Shown: positions 5,398 to 33,537 of the stretch, one piece after another
Layout: each line of letters begins with the position of its first letter
How positions within the stretch are numbered: the stretch's first letter is position 1
IMG/VR virus record: IMGVR_UViG_3300042879_006196
Location: 1-64,000 of that record
DNA length: 64,000 nucleotides
Direction: 5' to 3' (one strand)
The notes under the pieces: model-generated
Seen by the model: the letters and a program-made list of their open reading frames with translations, nothing else
What the model was told of the DNA's origin: nothing
Databases searched by the model: none
Translations under genes and position numbers: made by a program

Positions 5398-5400
5398 AAG

Positions 5401-8145: not shown

Positions 8146-8148
8146 TTG

Positions 8149-11102: not shown

Positions 11103-11126
11103 ATTACCTCTAACGTATATAAATTA

Positions 11127-11993: not shown

Positions 11994-12028
11994 TTTTCCA
12001 GGTTTAACAAAAACGGAATATAATCAAT

Positions 12029-13171: not shown

Positions 13172-13235
13172 AAATGAAATCGGGCAAAATCTGCCCGATT
13201 TTTTCCAGCTTTAACATAACCTGATTATTATAGAT

Positions 13236-13628
13236 ATGAAAGAATTCGGAAGTTTAGTAAATTACATCAAAACTGTGGCTACCAAAGGTATGCCAGCACC
13301 CCAAGTGGGAATGGGCGCAACCCTTCTTTGCTACACAGATAGACACGCTTGCACTGTCACAAAAGTATTCGAATTGAATAAAAAACTTTATGTTGAGATA
13401 CAGCAAGATTTTGCCTTTCGTATAGATGGAAATGGCATGAGTGAATGTCAAAAATATGATTTCAAACCTAATCCAAATGGATGCACTTACACTTATAGAT
13501 GGTGTGAAAAAAAGCAAAGATGGCTTAAAGTGTTCTTCAACGAAGAAACTAACAGATACAATTTAATTCAAAATGCATTTGGTTTATCTATTGGTAAAAG
13601 AGATGAATATTATGATTTTTGTTTTTAA
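13236..13628 (+). CDS. Phage hypothetical protein
   Basis: ORF starts directly at the repeated promoter. Confidence 0.75.
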   Translation: MKEFGSLVNYIKTVATKGMPAPQVGMGATLLCYTDRHACTVTKVFELNKKLYVEIQQDFAFRIDGNGMSECQKYDFKPNPNGCTYTYRWCEKKQRWLKVFFNEETNRYNLIQNAFGLSIGKRDEYYDFCF

Positions 13629-13665
13629 TTTAGCGTATAATAGATTGTAATTGAAAATTAAATAT

Positions 13666-13963
13666 CGGGGTGTGGTGAAATCGGTAGACACAACAGACTT
13701 GAAGTAAATTTGAGTGCTTGCATGACCCTTTTAGTGCGAGTAGAACCAGTCAAACTCGGTGAAGGCTTTGAAATGCTAATACCGAGCCAAGCCTAGAAAT
13801 AGGAAGGTGTAGAGACTAGACGGCTGGGCGATAAAGGAAATAAAAAAATCGCAAGGTATAGTCCAGAGTACAAACAAGAAAAATCTTGGTGGTGAAAACC
13901 ATAGTGCTACGAAAATCTGTCGGTAGCAATACTGTGAGGGTTCAAGTCCCTCTGCCCCGACCA
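13666..13963 (+). tRNA. trnL: tRNA-Leu(UAA) interrupted by a group I intron (exons 13666-13700 and 13912-13963)
   Basis: Joined exons give the stem-loop ACAGA-CT-TAA-AA-TCTGT, a long variable arm, GGTTCAAGTCC T-arm and CCA end. Confidence 0.92.
13701..13911 (+). ncRNA. Group I intron (211 nt) in the tRNA-Leu anticodon
   Basis: Inserted after U34 and ends in G; P/Q/R/S-like elements AAACTCGGTGAA, AATACCGAGCC, GTGTAGAGACTAGACGG, AAGGTATAGTCC. Confidence 0.9.
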
Positions 13964-13967: not shown

Positions 13968-14042
13968 GGGCTTATAGCTTAATGGTAAAGCGCTCGGCTC
14001 ATAACCGAAGGAGTGTAGGTTCAATCCCTACTGAGCCCACCA
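13968..14042 (+). tRNA. tRNA with CAU anticodon (Ile2 or elongator Met)
   Basis: GGGCTTA/TGAGCCC acceptor stem, CTCATAA loop, GGTTCAATCC, CCA. Confidence 0.9.
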
Positions 14043-14111
14043 ATCACACAATCTTAATTCAATAATTTGCCCGATTTTTTCCAGATTTAACACAATCTGA
14101 TTATAATAAAA

Positions 14112-14477
14112 ATGACATTTTTTGAAAACTTAATGATAGCACATTTTATTGGAGATTGGATTCTCCAACCTTCATCAATGGGAATACAAAAATCTTCCAA
14201 TTGGAAAATTAGATTTTTGCATTGCTTAATTTACACCGCTTGTTTTTTCTGGCTTAACTGGATTGCCTGTTTGTGGATTTTTATAACCCATTTTATCATT
14301 GACTCGTATATGCCTCTATTTTGGTTTAGAAAATTAAGAGGTGATTTTAAAACCATTGAAGAATTTAAAACTTCTTTTAACACACCTGCTGGCTTTTTTA
14401 TAAATGTTGTACTTGATCAAATTTTTCACATTATCACATTTTTGCCTGTAATTTTGTCCGTAAATTACAATAAATAA
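14112..14477 (+). CDS. DUF3307-like membrane protein
   Basis: AHFIGDW.LQ, LHC.IY, THFIID, DQ.FH motifs. Confidence 0.8.
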   Translation: MTFFENLMIAHFIGDWILQPSSMGIQKSSNWKIRFLHCLIYTACFFWLNWIACLWIFITHFIIDSYMPLFWFRKLRGDFKTIEEFKTSFNTPAGFFINVVLDQIFHIITFLPVILSVNYNK

Positions 14478-14478
14478 A

Positions 14479-17400
14479 ATGATTAATACAGATTGTGTGA
14501 AAATATATGAGGAAGAATATCAGGTGAGCAAGCAGGTGAGCCATCAGCAGGTGATGGATCGGGTGATGACTCTAGTGTGGTATCAGATTCGCCACGAGGT
14601 AGAGGATCAGGTATTAAGTGAGGTGTGGCTTAAGGTGTGGTATGATTAATACAGATTGTGTGGAAGTAAAAAAACAGGCACATAATCAGCTAAGGAATCA
14701 GGTGTTGAATCACGTGCGGTATCAGGTGTTGAATCACGTGCGGTATCAGGTGCTGAATCAGGTGTGGTATCTGGGGAGGGATCAGGTGTGGGTTAAGGTG
14801 TTTAGATGATTAATACAGATTGTGTGGAGATAAAAGATTGGGGTCATATAGAGGATCACGTGGAATATCAAACTTCGATTCAGGTATCAAATGAGGTGTG
14901 GAAGCAGGTGTATCTTCATCTGAGGAATCGAATGAAGAAAGAGATGTATTTCTACTTAAGGTGGGAGGTGTGGTTTAAGGTGTGGTTTGATTAATACAGA
15001 TTGTGTGGAGATAAAAGATTGGGGTCATATATTGGATCATGTGGAATATCAAATTTCGACTCAGGTGTCAAGTGAGGTGTGGAAGCAGGTGTATTCGCAG
15101 GTGAGAAATCAAACGATGGATGAAATGTATTTCTACGAGAGAAAACAGGTGTGGCTTAAGGTGTGGTTTGATTAATACAGATTGTGTGGAGATGTATGAG
15201 ATTAAAGATCAGGTGTGGGATAAGGTGGAGTATGAGGTTTCGATTCAAGTGAGGGATCAGGTGTGGGGTTATTTGTATTCCCTCATAAGGTACGAGGTGA
15301 GGCTTAAGGTGTGGTTTGATTAATACAGATTGTGTGGAGATAAAAGCGATTAGATATCAGGAGAGAAAACAGGTATGTGATCAGGTGAGAAATCAGGTGG
15401 GGAATGAGGTGAGGAATGAGGTGTGGCATCAGGTAGAGTATCAGGTGTGGGCAAAGGTGTGGTGGTCAGGTGAGGGGAATCACTTGAGTGATCGGATTTT
15501 CAAATGATTAATACAGATTGTTTAAAGGTGAAGGTTGAAGATCAGGTGCAGAATCAGGTGTATAATCTCCTAAGGATTCATGTGAAGCTCCAGTTGGACT
15601 ATCAGGTGTGGGATCGTTTGTTTTGGGAAATGCGGTGGAAGGTGTTCAAATGATTAATACAGATTGTGTGGAGATATTTGAGATTGAAAGTAAGGCGTAT
15701 GATCAGGTTATGGAACTGGTCTATTATCAGGTTTGGGAACAGGGGTGGTCGAGGGTAAGAGTGTATATGTGTCGTGAGGTGTTCAGATGATTAATACAGA
15801 TTGTGTGGAGATATTTAACATTAAAGATCGAGTGGGGGAGCAGGTGATATTTGAGGTGAGGATTAAGGTGGTGGATAAGGTGTTGTGGAAGGTGTATGAT
15901 TGGGCGAGGGATCAGGTAAAGGGTAAGGTAAGAGTGAAGGTGTTCAGATGATTAATACAGATTGTGTGGAAGTGAAGAATCAGGTGAAGAATCAAATGAG
16001 GAATCATGTACAGTATCATGTGCAGACTCAGGTGTATGAAAAGGTAGATTATCAGGTGTGGGATAAGGTGTGGTATCTAATGAGGAATAAGGTGATAAAT
16101 GATTGATATAGATTGTGTGGAGATATTTGAGATTAGAGATCGGGTGAAAAATCAGGTGGTGGATAAGGTGTTGTGGAAGGTGTGGTATCTGGCGAGGAAT
16201 CAGGTGAGGGGTCAGGTGTATCTAAAGGTGTGGGATAAGGTGTGTGATCAAGTTGTGTGTCAGGTGTGGCTTAAGGTGCTCAAATGATTAATACAGATTG
16301 TATGGTAGTGAAGAATCAGGTGAAGAATCAGGTGTTGGATCAGGTGAGTTATCAGGTGTGGGATCAGGTGCTGTATCAGATGTGGCATCAGGTGTATCAT
16401 CACGTGAGGGATCAGGTGTGGTATCAAGTGGAGGATCAGGTGTATGATAAGGTGTGGCATCCTGTGAAATATCGGGTAAAGGGTCAGGTGTTCGATGATT
16501 AATACAGATTGTTTGAAGGTGAAACATCAATTTAAGAAAGTGGAATCTCAGGTGTGGGATCAGGTGATAGATGATTAATACAGATTGTGTTGGAGTAAAT
16601 CATAAAGTATTTTTTGAGAATGTGTCCTTTGAATTGTGGCATCAGACGAGGAATAATCTAAGGTGGCAGGTGAGGAACCAGGTGTGGTTTAAGGTGTATC
16701 TTCAGGTATGGCATAAGGTGTTCAGATGATTAATACAGATTGTGTGGAGATATTTGAGAATCGAAATCAGGTGATAACTCAGTTGAGTGATCAGGTGAGT
16801 TCGAATCTGGTGCATAGTCAGGTGTGGTTTAAGGTGTTCAGATGATTAATACAGATTGTGTGGAGATATTTGAGAATCTAAATCGGGTAGAGGGTAAGGT
16901 GAGGCATCAGGCAAGAGATCAGGTGAGTAATCATGTGTGGTATAAGTTGCGGGATAAGGTGTGGTGGGAGATGTGGTGCTACGTAAGAGTGAAGGCGTGG
17001 AGGAAAATGTTCGAATGATTAATACAGATTGTGTGGAGATGTATGATAATATTGAGTTATGGTGGAAGGTGACAGATAAAGTGTATGCTGTGGCGAGGAG
17101 TCAGGTGCAGAATCAGGTATTGTTTCATACAAAGACTCATCCTAAGGTGAAACTGAAGGTGAAAGATCAGGTATATTATGAGGTGCTCAGATGATTAATA
17201 CAGATTGTGTGGAGATATTTGAGATTGAAGATCAGGGTTGGGATCAGGTGAGTGATCAGGTGAGTGATCAGGTGGAGTATCAGGTGTGGGAGCAGGTGTG
17301 GTGGAAGGTGTGGGATCAGGTGTGGTATCAGGTGTGGTATCAGGTGTGGTATCTGGCGTGGGATAAGGCGTGGGATGAGGTGATAAATGATTAATACAGA

Positions 17401-18082
17401 TTGTGTGGAGATGTATGAGATTGAAAATCAGGTGTGGGATCAGGTGAGTGATCAGGTGGAGCATCAAGTGTGGTATCAAGTGGAGCATCCTTTGTATGCT
17501 CAGGCGAGGGATCAAGTGATGAACCAGGTGTGGCTCAAGGTGTTCAGATGATTAATACAGATTGTGTTGAGATATTTGAGATTGAAGATCAGGCGTTGGA
17601 TCAGGTGAGTGATCAGGTGGAGTGGGAGGTGTGGCATCATGTGGAATATAAGGTGTGGTATAATGTGAGTAATCAGGTGAAAAACCCAGTGTGGTTTAAG
17701 GTGTTCGTATGATTAATACAGATTGTGTGGATGTGAAGGTTGAGGATCAGATTTGGCGTCAGGTGAGTTATCAGGTGGAGTGGGATACGCGGCATCATGT
17801 GGAGGTGTGGTATAATGTGAGTAAGCAGGTGAAAAACCCAGTGTGGTTTAAGGTGTTCGTATGATTAATACAGATTGTGTGGGTGTGAAGGTTGAGGATC
17901 AGATTTGGTGTCAAGTGGAAAATCAGGTGGAGTGTCAGTTGTCGTACTGGGTATGTGATGAGGTGAGATTTGATGCGGTTGATACAGTTTGGCATGAAGT
18001 GGGGTATAAGTTGTATGATCACATGGTTTTTCCAGGTTTAACATTACCCGATTATACTGGATATGATTCAAAAAAAAGATGA
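14479..18082 (+). repeat. MINTDCV micro-ORF array, block 1 (22 units by manual count)
   Basis: Repeat (A/T)TGATTAATACAGATTGTGTG at 14479, 14642, 14806, 14987, 15168, 15316, 15504, 15650, 15787, 15948, 16099, 16284, 16495, 16571, 16726, 16842, 17015, 17191, 17387, 17548, 17709, 17861; each opens a QVW-rich ORF that ends in the next repeat, except the last (17861), which runs on into the rIIA promoter. Confidence 0.95.
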
Positions 18083-20204
18083 CTTTGTAATCGACATGAA
18101 TTCCTCATTTGCACAACGAAAGTTCTCAGTTAAAACTGAGAATCTTGCTCATTTGTTCGACATAATGAGAAATTACATTTACTCAAACAAAATTCTTGCA
18201 GTTATTAGAGAGTACTCTACAAATGCAATTGATGCAAACATAAAAAATAACTTTGCATCTAGACCAATTTCAATCACATTGCCTACGTACTTCGAACCTA
18301 CATTTTCTGTAAGAGACTATGGCGCAGGTTTGAGCGAAGAAGAAATTTTTGAAATTTATTCTAGTTATGGAGAATCCACTAAAAGAGAAAGCAATGAATA
18401 CATTGGTAATCTTGGTATTGGAAGCAAATCTGGCTTCGCTTATTCTGATTCATTTACCATTACTTCATTCCATAATGGAACAAAAAAAATCTATGAAGCT
18501 TTCATTGATGAATCACAAATTGGTACAATTGCAAAAATTCATGAAGAAAAAAATGACAGTGAAAGCGGATTGTTAATATCTATTTCTGTTAATAAAAATG
18601 ACATCAATTATTTCAAAATTGAAGCAGAAAAGTTTTTCATGTGGTGGGATGTTACACCTGAATTTATTGGTGTCCAACCTGATTTTATGTCTCAATTTTC
18701 AACATACAAAAATGAATATTCTTCTAGTATTTGTCAAATCTTTTCAAAAAGATATTCTGAAACTTCAATTTCAGTTAAAATGGGTAATATTCTTTATCCA
18801 GTTACAAATTTTGATAAAATTGATTGTGATTGGTTGAAAGGTTTGTCTGTTGTCATTAAAGTAGGGCTTGGAGAAGTAAGTCACTCCGCTTCAAGAGAAT
18901 CTCTTGAAATGAATAGTTTAACTGTAGATACAATTAATACATATCTTCAAAAAATAAGAGAGACACTTACAGCACATTTCCTGAAGCAAATTGATGATTG
19001 CAAAACACCTTGGGGCGCAATCATAGAATATCATAATATGTCTTTTTTCGCTCAACAAACGATTGGTAAAAAAATATCTTGGAAAGGTAAAACTCTATCA
19101 ACGCAGTTACCGTCTAGTTTTCAATATTGTTTCTTTGATACATACTACAAAAAATGGAAGAAAAATGTAACTGTTCGATACTCCGCTGGAGACAGTGTGG
19201 CTTTTATTTTGAATGATGGAGGTTTTCCAGCGTCACAAACTAGAGCAAGGCTTCTAGCCGCACGTGATAAACTCAACAAGACAAACCTTTACACAAGTAT
19301 CATTTACATAAAAGGTTCAATCTCAGACACAAATGATTTACTAAAAAGTGACGAATTGATTGGATCAAATTATGTCAAGCTTTCAACGGTATTAGCAATT
19401 CCTACTAAAAATAAAAGTAAAAAAGCTGTTGCTGGAAAGATTCTTGAATGGAATTCCACAACAACATTTCCATACTCTACTTGCTGGGACTCTGTAGATA
19501 TACCAGACAGTGATGAAGAAATGATTTATGTTGAGATTGAAAAATTTGTGCCTGTCATGAGCAATTTTAATAACAGTAGCCGAGCGAGGTTTTATGATCT
19601 TAAAAATTGTTTGAATTTGATTCGTGATGTGGATAATAAAGTTTTCAAAATTTACGGAGTAAAAGCTGGTCAAAAATTACCTAAAAATTTTATTAGTCTG
19701 CATGATTACATGGAAAGGATGATTGTAAAATTCATTAAAACAGACGATTTTGTTGATAGTTATGTTCAACATGCAATTAGTCAAGTTAATTTAAGAACAT
19801 CATTCTTGAGTAGTGCAAGAACTCTAATGCAAACATTTGATACTGATATAATGAACAAATTCAATGATGTAAAATGCGAAAAGCTCAAGGCAATGTTTTA
19901 CTTTACTAAGCCTATGATGAATAAATTTTATCATCTTTTGACGAACATAAAAAACATTTCATTTCATTTTCCTAAAATAACCACTGCCTTGTCAGAGTTG
20001 GATGATTTGAAAGACAAAAGATTACAAGTTTGGAATCAAAACAAAAATTATTGTTTGGAAAATTATCCAATGATTGAATTTCATTATTCTCCAAACACTA
20101 TGGCTTTGACAAAAATGTTTGAATATGTAAATTCAATTCACGCAACACAAAACACTGAGAGGCACAAAAAGCCAATCAAAATTTCATCAAAAATTAATGT
20201 TTGA
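18063..20204 (+). CDS. rIIA: rIIA-like protein (N-terminal GHKL ATPase)
   Basis: Y.NK..AVIRE...NA.DA, F.VRDYG.GLS, YG.STKR.SN..IG.LG.GSKS.FAYSDSF, S.SRESL. Confidence 0.9.
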   Translation: MIQKKDDFVIDMNSSFAQRKFSVKTENLAHLFDIMRNYIYSNKILAVIREYSTNAIDANIKNNFASRPISITLPTYFEPTFSVRDYGAGLSEEEIFEIYSSYGESTKRESNEYIGNLGIGSKSGFAYSDSFTITSFHNGTKKIYEAFIDESQIGTIAKIHEEKNDSESGLLISISVNKNDINYFKIEAEKFFMWWDVTPEFIGVQPDFMSQFSTYKNEYSSSICQIFSKRYSETSISVKMGNILYPVTNFDKIDCDWLKGLSVVIKVGLGEVSHSASRESLEMNSLTVDTINTYLQKIRETLTAHFLKQIDDCKTPWGAIIEYHNMSFFAQQTIGKKISWKGKTLSTQLPSSFQYCFFDTYYKKWKKNVTVRYSAGDSVAFILNDGGFPASQTRARLLAARDKLNKTNLYTSIIYIKGSISDTNDLLKSDELIGSNYVKLSTVLAIPTKNKSKKAVAGKILEWNSTTTFPYSTCWDSVDIPDSDEEMIYVEIEKFVPVMSNFNNSSRARFYDLKNCLNLIRDVDNKVFKIYGVKAGQKLPKNFISLHDYMERMIVKFIKTDDFVDSYVQHAISQVNLRTSFLSSARTLMQTFDTDIMNKFNDVKCEKLKAMFYFTKPMMNKFYHLLTNIKNISFHFPKITTALSELDDLKDKRLQVWNQNKNYCLENYPMIEFHYSPNTMALTKMFEYVNSIHATQNTERHKKPIKISSKINV

Positions 20205-20474
20205 ATGACTTAGTTACCAACATGCAGAAAATTTAATCATGAAGTTTTTCAATAAATTCTTCTCACTGATTCAGATTGTGTGCATGTTGGTAATTTTGCC
20301 TTTTGCATTCTTTTACTTAACTATTTTAGATTTTTTGGATTACCAAAAATCAAAAAAAATGTAACTATTCTTGAATAGTTATCGTAAATAAAATTGTATT
20401 ATAGATTGAATCTTTTATAGAATTAGTGTGTAATACATTTTTTCCAGGTTTAACAAAACAGGATTATAATTAAC

Positions 20475-21569
20475 ATGGTTGAACAATTAACACAAGAACA
20501 AATAGACAGTTTTCCACGATTCAGAGATAAGTGGACAAACATCGGACGATCCACTGGCAGAGCTGACCTTTCAGTTGTAAAGCCAATTATCAACAAAATT
20601 TATGAGCAGAAAGATCTTGAAGCTCCAAAGTACTTCTTCCATTTTGGCAATCCGATGGATATGCTCAATGGACGAGTGATTTGCAGAATGCTCAACAGTT
20701 TTGATCCAAAAAATTATCAGAAAGATACAATCAATCTTGATAATGACTTCATGCGTATCTTTGATATGACCTATCAAATGTATTCTGAACAATTCGATTT
20801 GAAATCTGCACATGGTGTGGATTGGAGCGAAGACATCAAGCTTGGAATGCTTTCACATTGCCAAAATCTTTTGAAGTCTAAAAACATGCTTGCATACAGA
20901 AAAGAACTGGAAACTGATGTTCTTTATGGCAACCATGAAGCACACAATCTGGCTTACTACGAATTCTGGGACGAATGGTTCAAATTTGACTTCTTAAAGC
21001 CAATGCATGCATTTTTTGAACTCGCTAACCATCTTGGATGGTGGTGTGCTGAAAAAGAAGTGGCATATTTGTCAGACAAACCTGATGAAGTGCACGTGGA
21101 TGAACTAGGTAGACTTCACAACACCGCAGGACCAGCTGTCAAATACAGAGATGAATTCTCAATCTACTGCATCGAAAGCCATAGCGTTCCTGCCCACGTG
21201 GTAGAGGCACCAGACACAATTACAGTTGAAGAAATTGATTCTCAAACAAACGCTGAAGTTAGAAGAATTTTTATGACACAATTTGGATTCGAAAGATATT
21301 TCCAAGAAGCAAATTGTCAAATTATTGACCAGGATTTTACTGTTGTTGATTATAACAAACAAGAATCTATGCCAAGAATGCTCGTAAAAACTAAATTTGA
21401 TGATGTGTATTTGATCGGAACTGATGGCTCCACAAATCGTGTTTACTACATGCCAATTGGTAATGTAACCACAATCAAAGAAAGATTGGGTGTGAACATC
21501 AAAACCTGTAAGCAAGCACATGAAATCATTTCAGGTGTGAAAGAATCAAATATCATTTCGCAAAGCTAA
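20475..21569 (+). CDS. DUF6745-like protein
   Basis: N-terminal LT.EQ....R.KW..IG.ST..AD; C-terminal LH...GPA..Y.D.......VP..VV..P..IT...I....NAEVRR..M...G.ERY; recognised from memory. Confidence 0.75.
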   Translation: MVEQLTQEQIDSFPRFRDKWTNIGRSTGRADLSVVKPIINKIYEQKDLEAPKYFFHFGNPMDMLNGRVICRMLNSFDPKNYQKDTINLDNDFMRIFDMTYQMYSEQFDLKSAHGVDWSEDIKLGMLSHCQNLLKSKNMLAYRKELETDVLYGNHEAHNLAYYEFWDEWFKFDFLKPMHAFFELANHLGWWCAEKEVAYLSDKPDEVHVDELGRLHNTAGPAVKYRDEFSIYCIESHSVPAHVVEAPDTITVEEIDSQTNAEVRRIFMTQFGFERYFQEANCQIIDQDFTVVDYNKQESMPRMLVKTKFDDVYLIGTDGSTNRVYYMPIGNVTTIKERLGVNIKTCKQAHEIISGVKESNIISQS

Positions 21570-21599
21570 TATGTATAATAAATAACAAGGATAAAAAAA

Positions 21600-22037
21600 A
21601 TGACAAAAACCATTAAAAAAACCAAAGCTCAGAATAACCTTTCTGAAATTCAACAATTCGCCACTAAATCTAGCAACGATTGTCGCATCATTGACAAAAT
21701 TGAAGTGGGGCAGTGCGTGAGACAAGGGGATGTTTACATCACCCGAATCGAAAACTTCTCGAAAGTGGGATGCACTAAAGCAGGGCAAAAACTTGCTCCT
21801 GGTGACACCCCTGGCTCAAGACATTTTGTAGATGCACACGTTACTACTTGGCAAAATGAAAACACTGGAAAAGTTGTGCGAAATGAAGTGGGATTCACAT
21901 GTAAAGGATTGCTCCTTGAATGCGATAGAAGCTTCAAGGTCACACACCCTGAACATGCCCATTTCTATCTCCCTGCTGGCTCTTATGAAGTGAGCTATCA
22001 AGTTAACACCAAAGAAATGGCTAGAGTACTTGATTAA
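21600..22037 (+). CDS. Conserved small partner of DUF6745-type genes
   Basis: RQGDV, LA.G...G.RH, .THPEH....LP.G.YEV..Q, terminal RV.D. Confidence 0.7.
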   Translation: MTKTIKKTKAQNNLSEIQQFATKSSNDCRIIDKIEVGQCVRQGDVYITRIENFSKVGCTKAGQKLAPGDTPGSRHFVDAHVTTWQNENTGKVVRNEVGFTCKGLLLECDRSFKVTHPEHAHFYLPAGSYEVSYQVNTKEMARVLD

Positions 22038-22078
22038 AATCTAAAAACAACACACTCACATCTTTTCCAAAAACACCG

Positions 22079-22113
22079 AAGAGGACAATTCAAATATTGT
22101 CCTCTTTATTTTT
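22079..22113 (+). terminator. Intrinsic terminator closing the DUF6745 operon
   Basis: AAGAGGACAAT...ATTGTCCTCTT followed by a T-run. Confidence 0.8.
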
Positions 22114-22164
22114 CAATTTTTGCCCGATTTTTTCCAGATTTAACAATTATTATTTATATTAAAA

Positions 22165-25100
22165 ATGATCAACACAGATTGTGCGGAAGTAAATGAAAAA
22201 GTGAATCCTATACAGCATCATGCAATTAATCAAGTACAGTATGAATTGGAGATTGAAGTTTGGGATATGGTAAAATGTAAGGTATCAGGTGAGGTAAGTT
22301 GTCAGGTGTTCGATTGATTAATACAGATTGTGTGAAAGTGGAACATCCAGTGTGGACTCAAGTGCGAGATCAGCTGTTCTCTCAGGTGCAGTGGAAGGTG
22401 TGCCATAACGTGCTGACTCAGGTGGAGTGGAAGATGCATGATCAGGTGTGGTGGAAGGTGTTCGATTGATTAATACAGATTGTGTTAAGGTGTGGGAGAA
22501 AAAGGATAAGGTGAGGGGTCAGGTGTGTTATCAAGTGATGGGTCAGGTAGAAGATCAGGTGCATGGTCCTTTGTTTCGGGAAATGTGGTGGCAGGTGTGG
22601 TTTGAGGTTTTCAAATGATAAATACAGATTGTGTGAAGGTGAGGGAGAAAAAGATTCAGGAGTGCGATCAGGTGTATGAGCAGGTGTATGAGCAGGTGTA
22701 TTGTCAGGTGAGTAATCATGTGGAGTATCAGGTGTGGGAGCAGGTGTGGTGCAAGGTATGTAAAAAAGTGTGGTTTAAGGTCTATAATGATTAATACAGA
22801 TTGTGTGGAGGTGAGGGAGAAAAAGAATCAGGCGACTGAGCAGGTGTATGAGCAGGTGTGTGAGCAGGTGGGGTGGAATGTGGAGTATCAGGTGTGGGAG
22901 CAGGTAGAAGATCAGGTGTGGGATCGTTTGTTTTGGTACTCGCGCTTTGAGGTGTTCAAATGATTAATACAGATTGTGTGGTGAAGAAGCAGGTGTGGGA
23001 GTATGTAGAAAGTCAGGTGTTGTGGAAGGTGTATGATTGGGTGAGTGAGCAGGTGAATTGGCAAGTGGAGATTCAGTTGTGGGATAAGCTGTTTGCTCAG
23101 GAAAGACATCAGGTACGGCATCAGGTAAAAGTGAAGGTGTTCAAATGATTAATACAGATTGTGTGGAAGTTGAAAGCCATGTGAAGAATCAGGGGTTTGA
23201 TCAGGTGTGGAATCAGGTGGAACTTCAGGTGTGGGGTCAGGTGTGGGATTATTTGTGGTGGAAGGTGTGGCTTGAGGTGTTCGAATGATTAATACAGATT
23301 GTGTGTATGATTGGGTGAGTGGTGATTGGGTGAGTGATCAGGTGGAGCTTCATGTGAGGAATCAAGTGCGGGGTCAGGTGTGGGGTCAGGTGTGGGATAA
23401 GGTGCGGGATCAGGTGGAGTATCAGGTGTGGGAGCAGGTGTGGTTTGAGGTGCTCAGATGATTAATACAGATTGTGTGGAAGATCAGGTGGAGTATCAGG
23501 TGGAGTATCAGGTGGAGCTTCAGAAGTGGGGTCAGGTGTGGGATGAGGTGTGGTGGAAGGTGTGGCTTGAGGTAAGTGATCAAGTAAGGGATCAGGTGTT
23601 TTATAAGGTGTGGTTTGAGGTGTTCTATGATTAATACAGATTATGTGGTAAATAAGCAGGTGTGGTGGCATGCAGAAGATCAGGTGTTTTCGAATATGCG
23701 TGATTGGGTGTGGTGGCATGTAGAAGATCAGGTGTATGATCAGGTAAGGATATTGGTGCAGATTCATGTGTGGGATCAGGTGGGGGGTCAGGTGTATGAC
23801 CAGGTGTTCTATGATTAATACAGATTGTGTGAAGGTAAAGAAGCAGGTGTGGGAGCATGTAGAAAATCAGGTGTGGTTTGAGGTGTATGATTGGGTGAGT
23901 GAGCAGGTGAATTGGCAAGTGGAGATTCAGTTGTGGGATGAGGTGTTGTATCAGGTGTTGTGGATTAAGGTGTTTAGATGATTAATACAGATTGTGTGAA
24001 GATAAAAAATCAAATGTATGATCAGGTGGAGTGGAAGGTGTATGATCAGGAGTGGTGGTATCGGGTGAGCATTCTAGTGTTGGATCAGTTGGAGTATAAG
24101 GTGTGTAATCAGGTGTGGTGGGAGGTGTATAAGGGTGTGTGGCAGGTGTTAAAATGATTAATACAGATTGTGTGGAAGATCAGGTGTGGGATCAGGTGGA
24201 GCTTCAGGTGTGTAATCATGTGTGGTATCATGTGAGGTATCAGGCGTCTCAGCAGTTGGGGGTTAAGGTGAGAGGTCAGGTGAAATACAAGGTGAGGTAT
24301 CATGTGAGAGATCAAGTGGTGTGTGAGGTGTGGTATGATTAATACAGATTGTGTCAAGGTGAGGGAGCAAGATAAGGTGTGGGATCAGGTGTGGTGGAAG
24401 GTGCTCAAATGATTAAAACAGATATTGTGAAAGTGAAACGTGAAAATCAAATGTGTTTTAAGATTTATCACAATTTGGAACAACAAGTGCACTGGAATAT
24501 ACTTTATCTGGTGAAAGCTCAAACGAAAAATAGACTTTTTGCACAGAAGAATCTGCTGGGTAGGATTGTAGATCGCGAGATCAAAAGGCGCTCAAATGAT
24601 TAATACAGATTGTGTGGTTGTGTGGAATCAGGTGAGACATCAGGTACGGCATCAGGTAAAAGTGAAGGTGTTCAAATGATTAATACAGATTGTGTGGAGG
24701 TATGTGAGATTAATCATGTATGGACTCAGGTGAATTATAAGGTGACACATCAGGTGAAGAGAGTGGCATCTCAGGTTCACTCTGAGGTGAGACATCAGGT
24801 ACGGCATCAGGTGTGGTGTGAGGTAGAGGATCAGGTGGAGTGGAATGTGTGGAATAAGGTGCTGGGTCAGGTGTGGAATCAGGTGAGGATTCAGGTGTGG
24901 TATGATTAATACAGATTGTGTGGAAGATCAGGTGTGGGATCAGGTGGAGCTTCAGGTGTGTAATCAGGTGAGGTATCAGGTGAGGTATCAGGTGAGGGTT
25001 CAGGTGTGTGATAAGGTGAGGGGGAGGTGGTGCTACGTAAGAGTGAAGGTGTTGTTTAAGGTGTTCAGATGATTAATACAGATTGTGTGGAAGATCAGGT

Positions 25101-27430
25101 GTGGGATCAGGTGGAGCTTCAGGTGTGTAATCAGGCGAGGTATCAGGTGAGGTATCAGGTGAGGGAGGAGGTGTCTGATAAGGTGAGGGGTCAGGTGAGA
25201 TATAAGGTGAGGCATCATGTGAGAGATCAGGTGGTGTGTGAGGTGTTCTATGATTAATACAGATTGTGTAAAGGTGAGGGAGCAAGATAAGGTGTGGAAT
25301 CAGGTGCAGGATCATGTGTGGTTTGAGTTGTGGTATAAGGTGCGGGATCAGGTGAAGATTGAGGTGAGGTTTCAGGTGTGGGTTCAGGTGTTCAAATGAT
25401 AAATACAGATTGTGTGGAAGTGGAAGATGATTCAAATTTGACTAAAATGAAACATGTGTTGACTCATGTGCGCGATAGGGTGGAGGTTAGGGTGTGGTTT
25501 GCGGTGTCGGCTCTTGTGGAATGTCGGTATTGGTATGAAGTAAGAGATAATGTGTTCTAATGATTAATACAGATTGTGTGGAAGTGAAACATCCAGTGTG
25601 GGGTGAGGTGAGGGAACAGGCAAGGGTTACAATAGTTTATCATTTGTGGCATCAGGTGTGGTACCAGGTTGCGTGGGATGTAGAGGATCAGGTGTTGGAT
25701 CAGGTGTGGAATCAGGTGTTCTAATGATTAATACAGATTGTGTGGTAGCGAAGAATCTGGTGCGGAATCAAATGAGGAATCATGTACAGTATCAGGTGCA
25801 GACTCAGGTGTATGAAAAGGTAGATTATCAGGTGTGGGATAAGGTGCGATGGAAGGTGTATGCTCAGGTGCGGGATAAGGTGTTTAGATGATTAATACAG
25901 ATTGTGTGGAAGTGAGGGAGCGGGATCAGGCGTGGAAAAAAGTGCAGAATCATGTGTGGAATCAGGTGCAGGATCATGTGTGGTTTGAGTTGTGGTATAA
26001 GGTGCGGGATCAGGTGAAGATTGAGGTGTGGAATAGGGTGTGGTGGAAGGTGTTCAAATGATAAATACAGATTGTGTGAAAGATCAGGTGTGGAATCAGG
26101 TGTGGAATAAGGTGTTGAATCAGGCGTGGGGTCAGGTGGAGTATCAGGTGGAGATTCAGGTGTGGGATCAGGTATGGATTCAGGTATGGAAGGTGTGTTG
26201 TAAAATACAGAATCAGGTGTGGCATGATTAATACAGATTGTGTGGATGTATGTGATAATAATTATCAGTTTTGGTATGTAGTGTCTCAGGTTCAGGTTGA
26301 GGCAAATCAGGTGGAGATTCAGGTGTTTAGACAAGTGAGGAAACTAACGTGGGCTCAGGTAAGATATCAGGTGACACACAAGGTAATTGATCAGGTGTGG
26401 TATGATTAATACAGATTGTGTGAAAGATCAGGTGTGGAATAAGGCGCTGGATCAGAAGTGGGGTCAGGTGAGGAAACAGGTGTGTGAGCATGTATGGGAT
26501 CAGGTGTGGAATAAGGTGTGGGATCGTTTGTTTTGGGTAAGATTCAAGGTGAAGTATCAGGTGTGGCATGATTAATACAGATTGTGTGAAAGTGAGTGAG
26601 TGTGATAAGGTGCAGGATCAGGTGAGACAGCAGATGCGGGATCAGGTGAAAGATCAGGCGTTGAAGGGGTTTATTCAGGTATATTGGCAGGTGAGTAATC
26701 AGGTGGAGTATAAGGTGTGGGAGAAGGTGATCAAACAGGTACGACTTCAGGTGTGGTATGATTAATACAGATTGTGTGAAAGAGCAGGTGTGGAATAAGG
26801 TGCTGGGTCAGGTGAGATACAAGGTGAGGTATCAGGTAGAGGATAAGGTGGAGTGGAAGGTGTTAAATCAGGTATATGATAAGGTGTTTAAATTGAATTA
26901 TAAGGTGTTGAAAAAGGTGTTCAGATGATTAATACAGATTGTATAGAGATATTTGAGATTGAAGATCAGGCGTTGGATCAGGTGAGTGATCAGGTGGAGA
27001 TGGAGGTGAGGTATCAGGTGAGATATAAGGTGAGGCATCATGTGAGAGATCAGGTGTGGTGTGAGGTGTTCTATGATTAATACAGATTGTATAGAGATAT
27101 TTGAGATTGAAGATCAGGCGTTGGATCAGGTGAGTGATCAGGTGGAGATGGAGGTGTGGCATCATGTGTTGGATCAAGTTGTGGGTGAGGTGTGGTATCA
27201 GGTGTGGTATCAGGTGAATTATCAGGTGTGGTATGATTAATACAGATTGTGTGAAAGTGAAACGTGAAGATCAATTGTGTTTTAAGATTTATTATAATTT
27301 CGATCATAAAATGCACTGGGAGATGATGTATCAAGCGCATTACAAACCCCAATATCAAGCAGAATATTATTTATGCTGTAATATTTACAATAAAGGATGG
27401 AAGCAGATAACAGAGCAGATATTCAAATGA
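22165..27430 (+). repeat. MINTDCV micro-ORF array, block 2 (32 units by manual count)
   Basis: Repeats from 22165 to 27233 at about 75-230 bp spacing; first ATG lies directly behind the promoter at about 22126-22160. Confidence 0.95.
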
Positions 27431-27968
27431 TGAATCACTTCAAAGATTCCTTTTTTATGAAACATCCCACTGGACTCCGCGACAAAAAATGATCCCTCTT
27501 TAATGCAGAATAAAACACCTTTTCATCACCCTTTTTGTACCCCACACCTGACCAAAAACAAGGCTTCACACACACTAATTTATATGCCTTTCTGTTCATT
27601 TTTTACTCTATGAATTCCTATATGAACACACAATCTGAAACACGATCTCTATATCCCTAATACAATTAAGATACAATTAAAAAATCACATATTCATTATG
27701 CATTTTTTTCACCTTCCACCACCTCAAATGATAAAAAAAAAATTACACAAGATATATATGATTTTTTTCAATTTTTTCTACTCTATGAAAAATTAATGAG
27801 ATTTTTTGTCAAATCATTTTTCATCTCTGAAAAAATCATATCATTTTCTCTTTCTATTTTTTTCTGATTTTCGCCCGATTTTTCCTCATCAATTTTGCCC
27901 GATTTTTTCCAGTTTTAACATTTTCTTTTTATAATGTTTCCAAGACAAATTTCGTAGAATGTAGTGGT

Positions 27969-30900
27969 ATGATTAATATACATAATGTAGAATTGAATGA
28001 CAAGGATTACATAAAAATAAAAGATTTCATTTCTTCCCATGTAAATGAAAATGTCTGGTTTCGTGTGAATGATCAAGTGAGGAAATATTTCTGCCATAAA
28101 CACAGAGGTAAAATTTATAAGAGGATGTTCAAATGATTAATATAGATTGTGTGAAGGTATTTGATATGAAACAGGTGTGGGATGAGCTGACTTTTCAAGT
28201 GAGTGATCCAGTGGATAAGCATGTGCTGTCTGACGTGTGGTATCAAGTGAGGGATAAGGTGTGGATTCAGGTACGATTTAAGGTGTGGATTAGGGTGTTG
28301 TTATGGTTAATACAGATTGTGTGAAGGTGAGGGTGCTGAATCAGGTGAGTGATCAGGTGCGGGATCAAGTGAACTATCCAGAGGCAAATCATGTGCTGTC
28401 TGACGTGTGGCATCAAGTGAGGGATCAGGTGTGGATTCAGGTACGATTTAAGGTGTGGATTAGGGTGTTATGGTTAATACAGATTGTGTGAAGGTATTTA
28501 ACCTAATACAAGCGTGGGATGAACTAACAACTTATCAGGTAAGGTATTCAGTGAAATATCATGTGCTGCATAATCTCTGGTATGAAGTGGGGGCTGGGGT
28601 GAAGATTGAGGTGAGGCATAAGGTGTGGTTTGATTAATACAGATTGTTTGAAGTAAAAGTGATTAGATATCAGGTAAGTGATAAGTTGTGGGAGTTGGTG
28701 ATCAGACAGGTATGGAATCAGGTGAGGTATAATGGTCGGTGGCATCAGGTAGAGGGGAGGGTGCGGGATCGGTTGTTCAAATGATTAATACAGATTGTGT
28801 GGAAGTGAATTATAGGGGGTGGATTCAGGTACGATTTAAGGTGTGGTTTGAGGTGAGAGATCGGGTGTGGCTTGAGGTAAGTGAACATCCAGTGTGGAGT
28901 CAAATTTTTTTCCATCAGGTGTTTGAAAAGGTGGAGTGCGAAGTGTGGTATGATTAATATAGATTATGTGAGGGTGAGGAATCAGGTGGGTGAGCAGGTG
29001 AGCTGTCAGGTGTGGAATCAGGTGTTTGAGCATTTAGAAGATCAGGTAGAGTATCAAGTGTATAATCAGATTTTGTCTGAGTTGCATGATCAGTTGTATT
29101 ATAAGGACTGGGAGGTGTGTTATAAAATACGGCAAAAGGTGTGGTATGATTAATACAGATTGTGTGAAAGTGGAGAATCATGGTTGTTGGCAGTTTAGGG
29201 ATCAGGTGTGGTATCAAGTGGAGCAACAGGTGTGGCACAAGGTGTCTAATGGGGTTCGGGATAGGGTGTGGATTAAGGTGTTCAGATGATTAATACAGAT
29301 TGTGTGAAGGTATTTGAACTAAATCAATTGTGGAATCAAGTGAGTGATCAGGTGGAGTGGAAGGTGCGTGATGAGGTAGAGTATAAGGTGTGGCTTCAGG
29401 TAAGATACAAGGTGTGGGATCAGGTGCAGTTTTGGGTAAGATTCAAGGTGAAGTATCAGGTGTGGCATGATTAATACAGATTGTGTGGAAGTGAAACATC
29501 CAGTGTGGACTCAGGTGCAGAATCAGGTATATTGGCAGGTGAGTAAACAGGCATGTCATAAGGTGGAGTGGAAGGTGTGGCATAAGGTGTGTAGTGGGGT
29601 GCGGGAATGGGTTGTGTATCAGGTGTGGGATCGGGTTGTGTATCTAACGTTAAATGATTAATACAGATTGCGTGAAGGTATGTGAGATTAATCATGTATG
29701 GACTCAGGTGAATTATAAGGTGACACATCAGGTGAAAAGAGTGGCATCTCAGGTTCGCTTTGAGGTGATGAGTCAGGTGTGGGATCAGGTGTATTGGATG
29801 ATGTGGCAAAAGGTGGTGTGGTATGATTAATACAGATTGTGTGGAAGTGGAACATAAAGTGTTGGAGACGATGTGGTATCATATGTGGGAAAAGGTGTGC
29901 TATGGGCTGATATTTCAGGTATGTAGTGAAGTGAGGCTTAAAGTGAGGCTTAAGGTTTTTGTTTGAGGTGTGGTATGATTAATACAGATTGTGTGGAGAT
30001 GGTGCGTCCAGTGTGGACTCAGGTTCGAAATCAACTGTTTACTCAGGTGCAGAATCAGGTAGATCATAAGGTGAGGGCTCAGGTGTTCTTGAACGTGTGG
30101 TCTAAGGTGTGGGATCAGGGGTGGTATCAGGCGTGGGATAAGGTGATAAATGATTAATACAGATTTTGTGGAAGTGAAAAATCAAATGTGGGGTGAGGTG
30201 AGGGATCATGCGTGGTTGAAGGTGTGGTATCTGGCGAGGAATCAGGTGAGGAACCAGGTAAATGATCAGGTAAGTGGTGAGGTGATTAGTCTGCTTGTGT
30301 ATCAGGTGTGGCATCAGGTGTTGTATCAGTTGACTGATATGGTTTGGAATAAGGTGATAAATGATTAATACAGATTGTGTGGAAGTGAAAAATCATCCAC
30401 ATATGCAGGTAAGACAGCAGATGAGACACAGGGCGTGGTTTCAGGTGTGGAATCAGTTGGTTCCTATGGTTTGTGATCATGTGTGGAAGCACATGTATAT
30501 TCAGGTGCAAATTCAAGTGTTGGATAAAGTGATGTATGGATTGTATGAAGAAGGTGAACAATCAGGTGTGGCATGATTAATACAGATTATGTGGGCTTAC
30601 TCGGAGCGGCAAAAACTCAGGCTCAAAATGAAATTAACAGTATTGTGCAACTTGAAGTGTGGGAGAAGGTGATCAGTCAGGCATGGCTTAACACGTGGCA
30701 AAAGGTGTGGTATGATTAATACAGATTGTGTGAAAGTGGGGAATCCAGTGGGGAATCAGTTGGGGTTTGAGGTGAATTTTCAGGCGAGGTGGCAAGTGAT
30801 GTCTCATGTGGAATATGTGGTGCGGCATGATGTGAGGGATCAGCTGGAGTGCAAAGTTTGGTATATGTGGTGGAAGGTGTGCAAATGATTAATACAGATT

Positions 30901-33178
30901 GTGTGAAAGTGGAAAATCAAGTGTTTAATGAGGTGCAGAATCAGGTGTGGTGGAAGGTACATGCTCAGGTGTTCCGTAAGCTGAGAGGTAAGGAATGGTT
31001 GGCTGAGTTGTGGCAACAGAAAACATATGTTGTCACGTATCAGAATCAGGTTCTACTTAAAGTAAAACTTCAGGTGTGGTATGATTAATACAGATTGTGT
31101 GGAATTGTATAATGAGGTTTCGAATCAAGTGAGGGATCAGGCGTGGGCTCATGGACTTCAGGCGTGGTGGCAAGTGAGGAATAAGATAAGGTATCAGCCT
31201 TGGCATCAAATTAGTAGGAAGGTGAGAAAACAGGTATGGTATGAGGTGTGGTATGATTAATACAGATTGTGTGAAAGTGTATAATGAGGTGCAGAATCAA
31301 GTGAGGGATCATGTGTGGATTAATACAGATTGTGTTAATACAGATTATGTTGAATTGTATTATGAGGTTTCGATTCAAGTGAGGGATCAGGTGTGGTATC
31401 AGGCGTGGGATAAGGTTTGGGATCAAGTGAGGAATAAGATGAAGTATCAGGCTTGGCATCAAATTAGTAGGAAGGTTAGAAAACAGGTATGGTTTGAGGT
31501 GTAGTATGATTAATACAGATTTTGTGAAAGTGGAAATTTGGGTGTGGGATCAGCTAAAGAATCATGTGAAAAATGAATTTAGTAGTGAAGTGTGGCAACA
31601 GGTAAATGTTAGGATGTGCGATCAGGTGTGGGAGAAGGTGATCAGACAGGTACGATATAAGGTGTGGTATGATTAATACAGATTGTGTGAAGATATATAA
31701 TAGTAAAAATCCAATGATTGATCATATGTGGGATCTAGTGACAACCCAATCGTTTTATGAGTTTTTGAATTATGTGCTTTTCAAGGTAAAGAGACAGATA
31801 TGGAATAAGGTGTGGCTTGAGGTGTTCAAATGATTAATACAGATTGTGTGGAATTGAGCCATCACGCGCTGGATCAAGTGAGCAACAATACGCGGTATCA
31901 GCTGGAGTGGAAGGTATGGGCTCATGTGGATCATGCGGTAAAACAGATTGGTTTGCCGTTTAAGGTAAAGTTGCAGGTATGGAATAAGGTGATAAATGAT
32001 TAATACAGATTGTGTAAGGAATAAGATGAAGCAGAAGCACTTGGATTTTAGACATCAAACGCAAAAGTATGTATGGGCTAACTTTATATTAGGGCTTGAG
32101 TATCGTGTGAGACTTAATGTCTGTAGTAAGCTTACGAGTCAGATATATTATCAGGTGAGTGTATATATTTATAATAAGGTGTATGATGATTAATACAGAT
32201 TGTGTGCAGATAAATGATGATGAATATCAGGTAAAAAGTCAGAAGTATAAACATATATCTAATGAGATGTATCTTGAGGTGTGGTATGAGATGTCTCAAA
32301 AAGTATTATATTTTTCTGTGCGTGAGTTGTGCATTAAGGTGTTTAGATGATTAAAATAGATTGTGTGGAGATTAAGGTTCAACATCACATTTGTCTTGTG
32401 CACATTCATGTTTCTAATCAGGCTTATCAGGTGTGGGACAAGAATTGTAAAGGAGTGTGTTTTCCAAGGCGTCAGTTGTGGTTTGAGGTGTTTAGATGAT
32501 TAAAACAAATTGTGTGGAGATTAAGGTTCAAGATCAGATTTGGTTTGTGGATCATTATTTGTCCAATGAAATGTGGTGTCAGGCTTTGAACAATACAGTG
32601 CTTTGGGCAATTCCTAATGTGGTAATTTATAATGTGCGCGATAAAGCTTGGATCAAGGTGTTTAGATGATTAACACAGATTGTGTGAGAGTGGACAGTCT
32701 TGAAATAAAGCATGAAGTTGTTTTTGAGATGAGGAATAAAGTGTGGAATCAAATATATTATCATGTGTCTTGTAAGGTTTGGAGGCTGGTAAAGCTTCAG
32801 GTGTTTGGGTGTTCAGATGATTAATACAGATCGTGTGGATTTGAAAAATCATGATAATCTACATTATCATCTTACTAATTCACCAAGATGGTATGTGTGG
32901 GATCAAATTAATCTTCAAGTGAGGAATCATGTTTCTAAGGTAAGGTTTAAGTTGTGGGATGAGATGTTAAAATGATTAATACAGACTGTGTGAATATAAG
33001 GAATGGTGAAAAAATCCAAATGGATTTGCAGAACCATGTGGATATAGTTGATATCCATTCTGTTCGAAATTCTATTTATTATCAAGTAAGAAGATTAAGT
33101 AATGTAACTTTGATAAGATATAAATTACAAAAGATTTTTTTTGATTATTTGTCTTATGATTTATGTGGGATATTGTGA
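27969..33178 (+). repeat. MINTDCV micro-ORF array, block 3 (30 units by manual count)
   Basis: Repeats from 27969 to 32972; promoter at about 27903-27935; first and last units are the most diverged. Confidence 0.95.
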
Positions 33179-33350
33179 AAAAAAGTGGGAATCAGATTGT
33201 GTTAGATTGTGGTAAATTTATGGATAAAAAGTGGGAATTAGATTGTGTTAGATTGTGGTAAATTTATGGATAAAAAGTGGGAATTAGATTGTGTTAGATT
33301 GTGGTAAATTTATGGATAAAAAGTGGGAATTAGATTGTGTTAGATTGTGT
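33179..33350 (+). repeat. 46-bp tandem repeat, about 3.6 copies
   Basis: GTGGGA at 33185, 33231, 33277 and 33323; each unit carries two AGATTGTG. Confidence 0.92.
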
Positions 33351-33537
33351 TTTTATCGTTGCTCCTGCACACTCACCCCTCACACAATCTGAATTACTAT
33401 ATGAAGCCGATACACAATCTGAGTAATACTGGGGGTCATGGCTCCACAGACGTGCGGTTAAAAACTAAAATCAGATTGTGTATTTACGATCTGAATCAGA
33501 TTGTGTGTTTAGTTTTCGAGCAAATTTTTTTTCGAGC

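Follow-up and report, generated by a model that had tools for sequence, protein, structure and literature searches.

Three tandem arrays of protein-coding xQVx micro-genes in an uncultured phage and their relation to the tetrapeptide insert of DUF6745 proteins

The DNA analysed here, referred to as the window, is a stretch of 64,000 nucleotides corresponding to positions 1-64,000 of IMGVR_UViG_3300042879_006196, a 347-kb contig of an uncultured phage. It contains three arrays of very short genes placed head to tail, covering about 18.7 kb in total, in which a nearly constant head of seven residues is followed by a variable body built on a four-residue repeat (xQVx). These arrays consist of real protein-coding micro-genes under selection for coding. 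Judged by the pattern of their repeat, the micro-genes are shown to be homologous in design to the tetrapeptide insert of DUF6745 proteins, of which they represent a free-standing and hugely amplified form. Taken as a whole, the observations are best explained by coding xQVx arrays that would supply a variable helical repertoire acting with DUF6745 on the host, most plausibly on its defence, a reading in which we place a little better than even confidence. Its chief competitors are a sponge driven by dose, whose diversity would be neutral, and a set of internal proteins packaged in the virion, while readings of the arrays as non-coding DNA, as precursors of ribosomally synthesized and post-translationally modified peptides (RiPPs), or as an assembly artefact are unlikely. 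To our knowledge, this would be the largest tandem family of independently translated micro-genes in a phage, and nothing comparable was found in the full-text literature searched.

Architecture and coding character of the three arrays

The head, a 21-mer with the sequence ATGATTAATACAGATTGTGTG, was identified on the plus strand in 81 copies at up to two mismatches (0 expected by chance) and in 84 copies at up to four, 47 of them exact. The 84 heads are split 22+32+30 across the three arrays, in exact agreement with the count of about 84 given in a preliminary description of this DNA. Array 1 occupies positions 14479-18082 (22 micro-genes, heads at 14479-17861), array 2 positions 22165-27430 (32 micro-genes, heads at 22165-27233), and array 3 positions 28133-33178 (30 heads at 28133-32972), all on the plus strand. 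The first head of array 2 has the divergent form ATGATCAACACAGATTGTGCG, and array 3 includes a frameshifted pseudogene (28630-28780) and an in-frame partial head (31316), the latter counted among its 30. The open reading frames (ORFs) of the units encode 25-83 amino acids, with a median of 57, and their MINTDCV head, period-4 body, and constrained tail are as previously outlined, when a range of 25-85 residues was given. Heads read MINTDCV or a one-residue variant of it, with a conserved Cys as residue 6, while the tails, of 4-5 residues, are mostly VWYD, KVFR, VIND, VWFD, or KVFK.

The bodies repeat with a period of 4 residues, or 12 nt, and the sequence between heads measures 53-232 nt and is 12-nt periodic inside. 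Each tetrad follows the formula x1-Q-V-x4, in which Q and V are conserved and x1 (D, Y, N, H, and others) and x4 (W, R, E, S, and others) are free. Among 529 scored tetrads, which were selected by their V so that this residue is fixed by the procedure, position 2 was Q, K, or E in 79%, and x1 and x4 were variable. Asp occupies x1 in 117 of the 529 tetrads; the frequent GAT-CAG (Asp-Gln) codon pair creates many GATC sites, a remark drawn from the codon pair and not from a count of GATC. The units are strongly diversified, with a median identity of 46% to the nearest paralogue and no pair among 83 units more than 75% identical, which agrees with the proposal that one peptide family was amplified about 84-fold and diversified.

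The boundaries between units are set by the heads. The start codon ATG lies within the head, organized as ATGATTAATA-CAGATTGTGT-G, and the stop codon of each unit is provided by the head that follows, as the TGA of ATGA in 42 units and the TAA of GATTAA in 38. With a start codon in one of its frames and stop codons in both others, the head closes any incoming frame and allows translation to restart. The hexamer AAGGTG is located in the unit tail, 4-5 nt upstream of the next ATG. Almost every unit had been reported to be open as far as the next repeat, and this was observed for 77 of 80 bodies in the ATG frame, compared with 2 of 80 in each of the other plus-strand frames. Of the two exceptions then named, the frameshift in unit 29823 is present but confined to the last codons, so that a normal KVFV tail is still reached; the TGG to TAG change in unit 31253 was also found, near the end of the unit and together with an in-frame partial duplication of the head. 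That list missed unit 28630, the sole clearly dead unit, which has a TTG start, a frameshift straight after the head, and a stop after 8 codons. Units 28133 and 28303 run 7 codons into the following head because that head begins with ATGG, which abolishes the TGA.

Several independent measures show selection for coding, as the preliminary description had proposed. In the body codons, 8 stops were counted among 3829 codons of the ATG frame, compared with 307 and 366 in the other plus-strand frames, and base composition predicts 266-287. For the codon TAG, positional base frequencies predict 193 occurrences, and 2 were found; T is the first base of 3% of NAG codons, compared with 27% and 44% at the first base of the x1 and x4 codons, respectively. 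Unit length modulo 3 is never 0 in 80 units, for which the chance is (2/3)^80 (P ~8e-15), and unit lengths differ by multiples of 3 and not just of 12. Comparison of 40 orthologous unit pairs between strains yielded 113 body substitutions, none of them nonsense against 8.4 expected (P ~2e-4), and the clean orthologous indels measured 3, 6, 12, 15, 12+3, and 24 nt; these were taken from clean pairs with one or two gaps only, as automated alignment of units of unequal length was noisy. On the minus strand, ORFs of up to 156 aa cross the units, but the stop counts of its three frames (245, 95, and 260) leave none consistently open. The same repeat is also part of ordinary longer proteins, the DUF6745 inserts described below.

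The 12-nt unit can be written N-A-T / C-A-G / G-T-G / N-G-G. Its four third codon positions carry 0.94, 0.94, 1.07, and 0.57 bits of information, and the first positions of x1 and x4 carry 0.09 and 0.19 bits. Codon usage in the arrays is opposite to that of the rest of the phage, with CAG used in 84% (CAA 86% elsewhere), GTG in 79% against 22%, and AAG, GAG, and AGG preferred as well; the coding strand is G-rich, and the GC skew reaches 0.6 across the arrays (window positions 14000-33000). The recurrence of AGGTG every 12 nt was considered as a Shine-Dalgarno-like ribosome sponge or a selected DNA motif and was rejected as the main explanation because L004, one of the related lineages presented in the next section, encodes its QV repeats as CAAGTC/CAAGTT where the window uses CAGGTG. 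The same peptide is thus written with other codons, and the conserved entity is the peptide and not a DNA word. A clustered regularly interspaced short palindromic repeat (CRISPR) array was rejected as well, since such arrays have near-constant spacers and no ORF constraint, whereas the intervals here range from 53 to 232 nt and one frame is open. In a check for a diversity-generating retroelement, which would confine variation to template adenines, no reverse transcriptase was found in about 20 ORFs scanned, and the first codon positions vary among all four bases. Gene calls recorded for some assemblies of close relatives (L008, listing about a dozen units, and L009) omit many units in comparison with those for L010 and L011, so that automatic annotation under-reports micro-genes of this kind.

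The DUF6745 insert and arrays in other phages

Between arrays 1 and 2, the window encodes a 364-aa DUF6745 protein (20475-21569, plus strand), followed on its 3' side by a 145-aa partner gene of family phrog_27831 (21600-22037, plus strand). A profile search with DUF6745 (PF20530) returned 15,335 clusters at E up to 0.001. In 51 of 161 representatives of the family, a period-4 run of at least 24 aa was observed, starting from about residue 60-100 and located between an N-terminal domain and the DUF6745 core. Many of these inserts have the exact form xQVx, the variable places being taken by W, G, R, D, or N, and thus share with the micro-genes a period-4 repeat of two conserved and two variable residues. 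The two forms differ in that the inserts are fused within a protein, whereas the window units are separate ORFs of about 57 aa with their own start and stop, multiplied 84-fold. The DUF6745 protein of the window has no such internal repeat and shows a non-repetitive helical stretch where the insert would be. Because xQVx inserts occur in many DUF6745 proteins and the window protein has none, the micro-genes can be regarded as the repeat module in free-standing form, and this split-versus-fused pattern argues that the peptides and DUF6745 work together.

Two further phage proteins illustrate the fused form. A micro-gene peptide of lineage L007 matches the repeat of gp38 of Mycobacterium phage prophiGD102-1 (tblastn, E=6e-5); this protein (QSM05137.1) combines an N-terminal domain, about 50 xQLx repeats, and a DUF6745 core in one chain. 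In UOF77368.1 (Caudoviricetes sp. MW202476.1), SSLx repeats are found at the equivalent place of a DUF6745 protein.

The preliminary description knew of no described phage system with such an architecture and proposed a search for other arrays. That search showed that the window is not isolated, as tandem xQVx micro-gene arrays with other heads are present in at least five further metagenomic phage lineages (L004/L005, L007, L017/L018, L019/L020, and L022); together with the DUF6745 insert and the analogous gp54 of phage Tweety, discussed below, they call for a revision of the earlier statement. As far as the literature was searched, no such metagenomic arrays have been described. In these arrays, genes of 46-90 aa follow one another head to tail, the stop of one overlapping the start of the next; the head is constant in any one phage, the body is a QV repeat of period 4, and the tail is conserved. 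In comparison with the 84 units of the window phage, they hold roughly 3-25, and their heads (such as MTYFEQL, MKSVKxQV, and MINVKNK) are wholly different from one lineage to another, in contrast to the conserved QV body, for which at least L004 and L007 use other codons. Counting the window, six lineages have arrays, and in five of them a DUF6745 gene is located within a few kb: micro-genes stand beside or flank this gene in the window and in L004, L007, L017, and L022. In L021, the DUF6745 gene adjoins a single micro-gene. A generic-repeat profile also retrieved 613 small proteins from metagenomes, some of which are probably fragments of fused proteins.

Lineage L004/L005 carries about 25 tandem micro-genes with the head MTYFEQLTK, the tail KEIQ, and an xQVx body, beside a DUF6745 gene whose product is 27% identical to that of the window. 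Heads in L007 read MKSVKHQV and those in L017/L018 read MINVKNK, and all of these arrays adjoin DUF6745. Members of the phrog_27831 family are neighbours of DUF6745 in the window and in L004 and L007; in L015, the neighbour of DUF6745 is a similar protein of 149 aa. The L004 head MTYFEQLTKDQV (array at 8701-13715) resembles the N-terminus of the adjoining DUF6745 protein (..IEKLTQEQVDS.., 14376-15431), a likeness which hints that the units may have arisen from the 5' end of a DUF6745 gene. In L007 (11746-13055), CsgF- and CsgG-like curli secretion proteins are encoded 1.5-3 kb from the micro-genes and DUF6745.

An AlphaFold2 model of the window DUF6745 protein, helical in its N-terminal half and rich in beta structure in its C-terminal half, reached a predicted local distance difference test (pLDDT) score of 92.7. 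No PDB fold matched it (best E=1.4), and its matches in BFVD were other DUF6745 proteins only, such as that of Microcystis phage LMM01. A profile match of DUF6745 to the influenza PA endonuclease (E=0.36) was not significant and was not used. No paper mentioning DUF6745 was found in the literature searched.

Variation between strains and possible role of the peptides

In four independent assemblies of close relatives (L008-L011), the flanks are 97-98% identical to those of the window, the gene order is retained, and 61-72 units are present. Orthologous units in these collinear arrays are 95-100% identical. Turnover is nevertheless visible at the level of whole units: in comparison with L010, 42 of the 84 window units match at 90% or more, and 26 have no counterpart above 60%. 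The family therefore evolves through gain, loss, and replacement of whole units between strains, together with amino-acid change at x1 and x4. Between strains, V was changed in 0.8% of codons and Q in 1.4%, compared with 1-11%, mostly 4-10%, for other residues. The ratio of non-synonymous to synonymous rates (dN/dS) is 1.12-1.36 for orthologous units against 0.37 for the neighbouring rIIA-like gene. The non-synonymous rate of the x codons is 1.5 times the synonymous rate of the array (P=0.08) and 2.5 times that of the flanking genes (P=0.009), which suggests selection for amino-acid change, although it does not prove it. Two of the signs named beforehand for a non-coding satellite were stop codons at the neutral rate and a dN/dS near 1; stops in the ATG frame are far below that rate, but dN/dS does come close to 1.

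No significant family was assigned to the peptides in Pfam, NCBIfam, PHROGs, or PADLOC, and weak compositional matches, among them DUF4816 and phrog_33514, were not taken as significant; all PHROGs hit are families of unknown function. A profile search of PDB sequences with the peptides likewise returned nothing. AlphaFold2, given one product with its paralogue alignment, modelled a single continuous helix over residues 5-57 (pLDDT 81), and the model indicates that the peptide likely forms a helix; a seam of Val residues at a strict period of 4 would wind around an alpha-helix as a spiral.

The closest studied analogue for such variation is gp54 of mycobacteriophage Tweety. It contains 48 A-A-x-x repeats with a 12-bp unit whose third codon positions are invariant while the first and second vary, a pattern that its authors interpreted as selection for variation, and the repeat number differs between related phages (PMC2884959). 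In mutants that have escaped the Phrann gp29/gp30 defence, gp54 has an altered number of repeats, for which reason it was described as a tunable counter-defence system (PMC9262239). The gene is located in a non-structural region and is dispensable (PMC2884959; PMC9262239); Che8 gp57 and PMC gp51 are grouped with gp54. The window micro-genes share with gp54 the 12-bp unit, the two invariant and two variable residues, and the conserved third codon positions. They differ in that gp54 is a single protein with its repeats between unique N- and C-terminal domains, whereas the micro-genes have a 7-aa head and a 4-5-aa tail; moreover, the counter-defence role of gp54 was shown genetically, and that of the window micro-genes is proposed. 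The presence of the repeat in many DUF6745 proteins and of a DUF6745 gene between the arrays suggests that the peptide repertoire, which is large and changes fast, probably acts on the host.

In the mechanism that we propose, promoter cassettes of the phage itself would drive the arrays, together with the rII, anti-restriction, and nicotinamide adenine dinucleotide (NAD)-salvage genes of the region. The peptides would constitute a repertoire of variable helical modules that work with DUF6745 and the 145-aa partner, onto which they probably dock in trans. Such docking would retarget or tune an interaction with host proteins, most plausibly those of host defence. The strict nucleotide conservation of the head would have a second cause at the level of DNA or RNA, which could be a shared regulatory motif or homology for unequal recombination. 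The findings join three things that had been unconnected so far, namely recurrent micro-gene arrays of environmental phages that had not been described, the DUF6745 tetrapeptide insert, and Tweety gp54, the only tetrapeptide-repeat phage protein that has been studied. Phages may diversify a helical repeat in either of two ways, through repeat number in a single protein or through a split into many variants, each encoded by a gene of its own. A more far-reaching version, to which we attach rather low credence, is a germline-encoded combinatorial repertoire in which the DUF6745 scaffold and its partner would accept any of the approximately 84 helices in trans, each offering its own x1/x4 surface on a constant Q-V seam, with the set renewed by unit shuffling. 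If that were so, one phage would come equipped with dozens of specificities directed at host defence or at targets of takeover, as a phage counterpart of a variable-receptor repertoire, and the 15,000-cluster DUF6745 family would obtain its first function.

A number of observations weigh against this repertoire. Tweety gp54 has no DUF6745 domain, and no Pfam family is common to gp54 and anything in the window locus, so that the repeat is the sole basis of the functional analogy, which is a likeness of design rather than of demonstrated descent. Both DUF6745 and its 145-aa partner are functionally uncharacterised and gave no PDB fold match and no PADLOC hit. Relaxed constraint would account for a dN/dS near 1 just as well as diversifying selection would, and the excess of x-codon change over the array synonymous sites is not significant. 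The hydrophobicity power of the peptides peaks at 90 and 180 degrees and not at 100 degrees, which makes a single amphipathic helix uncertain. In the widespread freshwater lineage L019/L020, about 22 tandem MKSVxxQV units of about 60 aa and very uniform length (array at 5282-9172, present in 94 blocks of the contig collection) have no DUF6745 within 6 kb on either side, and L015, whose DUF6745 is 40% identical to that of the window, holds just a few units, with the heads MIKLDCV or MIALDCV.

A first alternative is that the peptides are real and their diversity is drift. A generic QV helix would then have been amplified for dose, as a sponge for a host protease, chaperone, or sensor or simply as filler, and the copies would have decayed under weak constraint; poxvirus gene accordions are a precedent for copy-number amplification for dose. 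The dN/dS of about 1.1-1.4, the conservation of Q and V only, the free gain and loss of units between strains, and the x-codon excess that falls short of significance against the array synonymous sites (P=0.08) are consistent with this account. Drift, in contrast, would leave third codon positions less conserved than first ones, and the reverse was observed in the x codons, which also changed 2.5-fold faster than the synonymous sites of flanking genes (P=0.009). Furthermore, with no pair of units above 75% identity among the 83, there is no sign of recent amplification for dose. We consider this explanation unlikely, though the most probable of the alternatives.

The hypervariable bodies behind a short N-terminal head that is constant within the phage also recall the T-even internal proteins, diverse anti-defence proteins common only in a short capsid-targeting sequence (PMC3012670). 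On this comparison, the head would be a capsid-targeting sequence, and the peptides would be packaged into the prohead, injected with the DNA, and would block defences on entry. The likeness extends to small, diverse proteins with a short conserved N-terminus in rII-bearing phages engaged in conflict with host defence: the window phage has rIIA- and rIIB-like genes, and the heads are lineage-specific, as if co-evolving with a scaffold. The difference is that the window presents 84 members of one repeat family with a head conserved at the nucleotide level. T-even internal proteins are only a few in number, and their bodies are unrelated and non-repetitive. Conservation of the head at synonymous sites and its sharing of a DNA motif with promoters would be needless for a peptide signal. 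No conserved cleavage motif follows the head, position 8 being E in 38 units and K in 27, and the arrays are placed among rII, NAD-salvage, and anti-restriction genes. The repeat is also found inside DUF6745 in a mycobacterial prophage and in an integrase-carrying record, with no T4-type gene in the stretch examined. For these reasons, packaging as internal proteins appears distinctly improbable.

A RiPP-like precursor library was also considered, in which each unit would consist of a short conserved leader and a variable core, with an unrecognised modifying enzyme in the form of DUF6745 or its partner. The conserved head, variable body, many tandem copies, Cys at position 6, and adjoining conserved gene pair are as such a library would show. 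The head, however, is only 7 aa long and differs between lineages, other lineages have no Cys, and no known RiPP enzyme family was detected in Pfam and PHROG scans of the larger neighbouring ORFs. In addition, the repeat is covalently part of many DUF6745 proteins, and the cores are periodic rather than free, which makes this reading very unlikely.

We give slightly less credit still to a non-coding DNA or RNA element, such as a transcription-factor sink, in which 84 copies of the CAGATTGTGT motif would be spaced by a G-rich 12-nt satellite and the ORFs would be incidental. This idea is consistent with the occurrence of the head motif in 34 promoter cassettes and in the 46-bp repeats at 33180-33349, as well as with the opposite codon usage and the GC skew of up to 0.6. 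It is contradicted by the depletion of stops in the ATG frame only, by the lack of nonsense substitutions and the indels in threes between strains, and by the retention of the QV peptide with different codons and heads in other lineages and within ordinary proteins. Finally, although short-read metagenome assemblies often mishandle repeats, collapsed or chimeric repeats can be dismissed almost entirely, as just the 21-nt head is repeated, all bodies are unique, and four other assemblies from different samples are collinear with orthologous units 95-100% identical.

Promoter cassettes and genomic setting

The head was first described as a fixed MINTDCV peptide; it is indeed constant within the phage, but there is more to it than the peptide, since its synonymous sites are conserved and it contains a 10-nt motif of the promoter cassettes. 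In the window, 34 near-identical copies of a terminator-promoter cassette were identified (e.g., at 38527, 49214, 50487, 56020, and 63290). Each consists, in order, of the hairpin CCCCTCCAAAGGGGAGG, TTTTCCAGGTTTA, ACACAATCTGATTATAAT, AGAT, and ATG, so that the -10 box ends 4 nt before the start codon. This arrangement suggests that the mRNAs are leaderless and that the promoters form a class specific to the phage, marked by an inverted 10-mer that surrounds the -35 element. The 10-nt CAGATTGTGT of the head is the reverse complement of the ACACAATCTG found in these 34 cassettes. The CAGATTGTGT 10-mer often also stands just 5' of the -35 element, and it has 29 plus-strand occurrences outside the arrays. 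Directly 3' of array 3, a 46-bp tandem repeat (33180-33349, plus strand, 3.7 copies, 99% matches) contains two (C/T)AGATTGTG motifs per copy and, in each copy, (C/T)AGATTGTGT, the motif common to heads and cassettes; four more motif copies, in both orientations, are present at 33380-33510. The head motif may be a regulatory site, and identical heads certainly supply homology for unequal recombination. Lineages L004 and L007 have ordinary promoters and Shine-Dalgarno sites, and no resemblance of their heads to those sequences was seen; a motif common to head and promoter thus seems particular to the lineage of the window phage, and of secondary rank to the peptide.

Promoter-like sites precede each array. 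The first, at 14078-14107 on the plus strand (TTTCCA-18-TATAAT, with ACACAATCTG within the spacer), is located before a gene for a DUF3307/phrog_2470 membrane protein (14112-14477, plus strand) and array 1, whose first unit begins 1 base past the DUF3307 stop codon, a position likewise kept in related strains. The last unit of array 1 overlaps by 20 nt the start of the rIIA-like gene (18063-20204, plus strand, 713 aa), which together with DUF6745 and its partner fills the interval to array 2. Just 5' of array 2, a terminator-like hairpin (22078-22107) is followed by a promoter-like site (22131-22160), both on the plus strand. Array 3 is preceded by a promoter-like site at 27906-27935 and by a degenerate 55-aa unit (27969-28136, MINIHNV...), also on the plus strand, the stop of which overlaps the first head of the array. 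Arrays 1 and 2 contain no terminator-like site, and array 3 contains one weak site (30449). From this layout, we infer three polycistronic transcripts, which would be translated via termination and restart.

All sizeable ORFs of the window are on the plus strand. Upstream of the arrays, Pfam and PHROG scans identified an ATP-dependent DNA ligase gene, a NAD+ salvage region with a nicotinamide phosphoribosyltransferase (NAMPT) and a phosphoribosyl pyrophosphate (PRPP)-synthase-like gene (8361-10732), and a Mom-like DNA modification gene (11127-11993), all on the plus strand; an rIIB-like gene (12029-13171, plus strand) and a tRNA-Met (13968-14042) follow. Further downstream of the arrays, an anti-restriction-type gene of family phrog_7245 was found at 45135-46010. 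The NAD+ salvage, Mom-like, and anti-restriction-type genes fit a host-takeover and anti-defence region.

No close cultured phage was found, as the rIIA-like protein had a best identity of at most 33% to anything among 50,697 phage records. At the DNA level, the array with its left flank had no match in the same records except one stretch of 76 nt. The exact head was absent from 185,579 species genomes, so that no prophage or spacer lead to the host was obtained.

The Rfam scan of the window detected tRNAs only, five in number, with the identities Asp(gtc), Asn(gtt), Thr(tgt), Met(cat), and Lys(ttt), at 48946-49180, 13968-14042, and 56829-56904. Asn, Thr, Asp, and Met, four of the residues served by the phage's tRNAs, make up 4 of the 7 residues of the head, which is translated 84 times, a coincidence that may be due to chance. 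The anticodon of Thr(tgt) pairs exactly with the head codon ACA, and Asn(gtt) and Asp(gtc) reach the head codons AAT and GAT via wobble.

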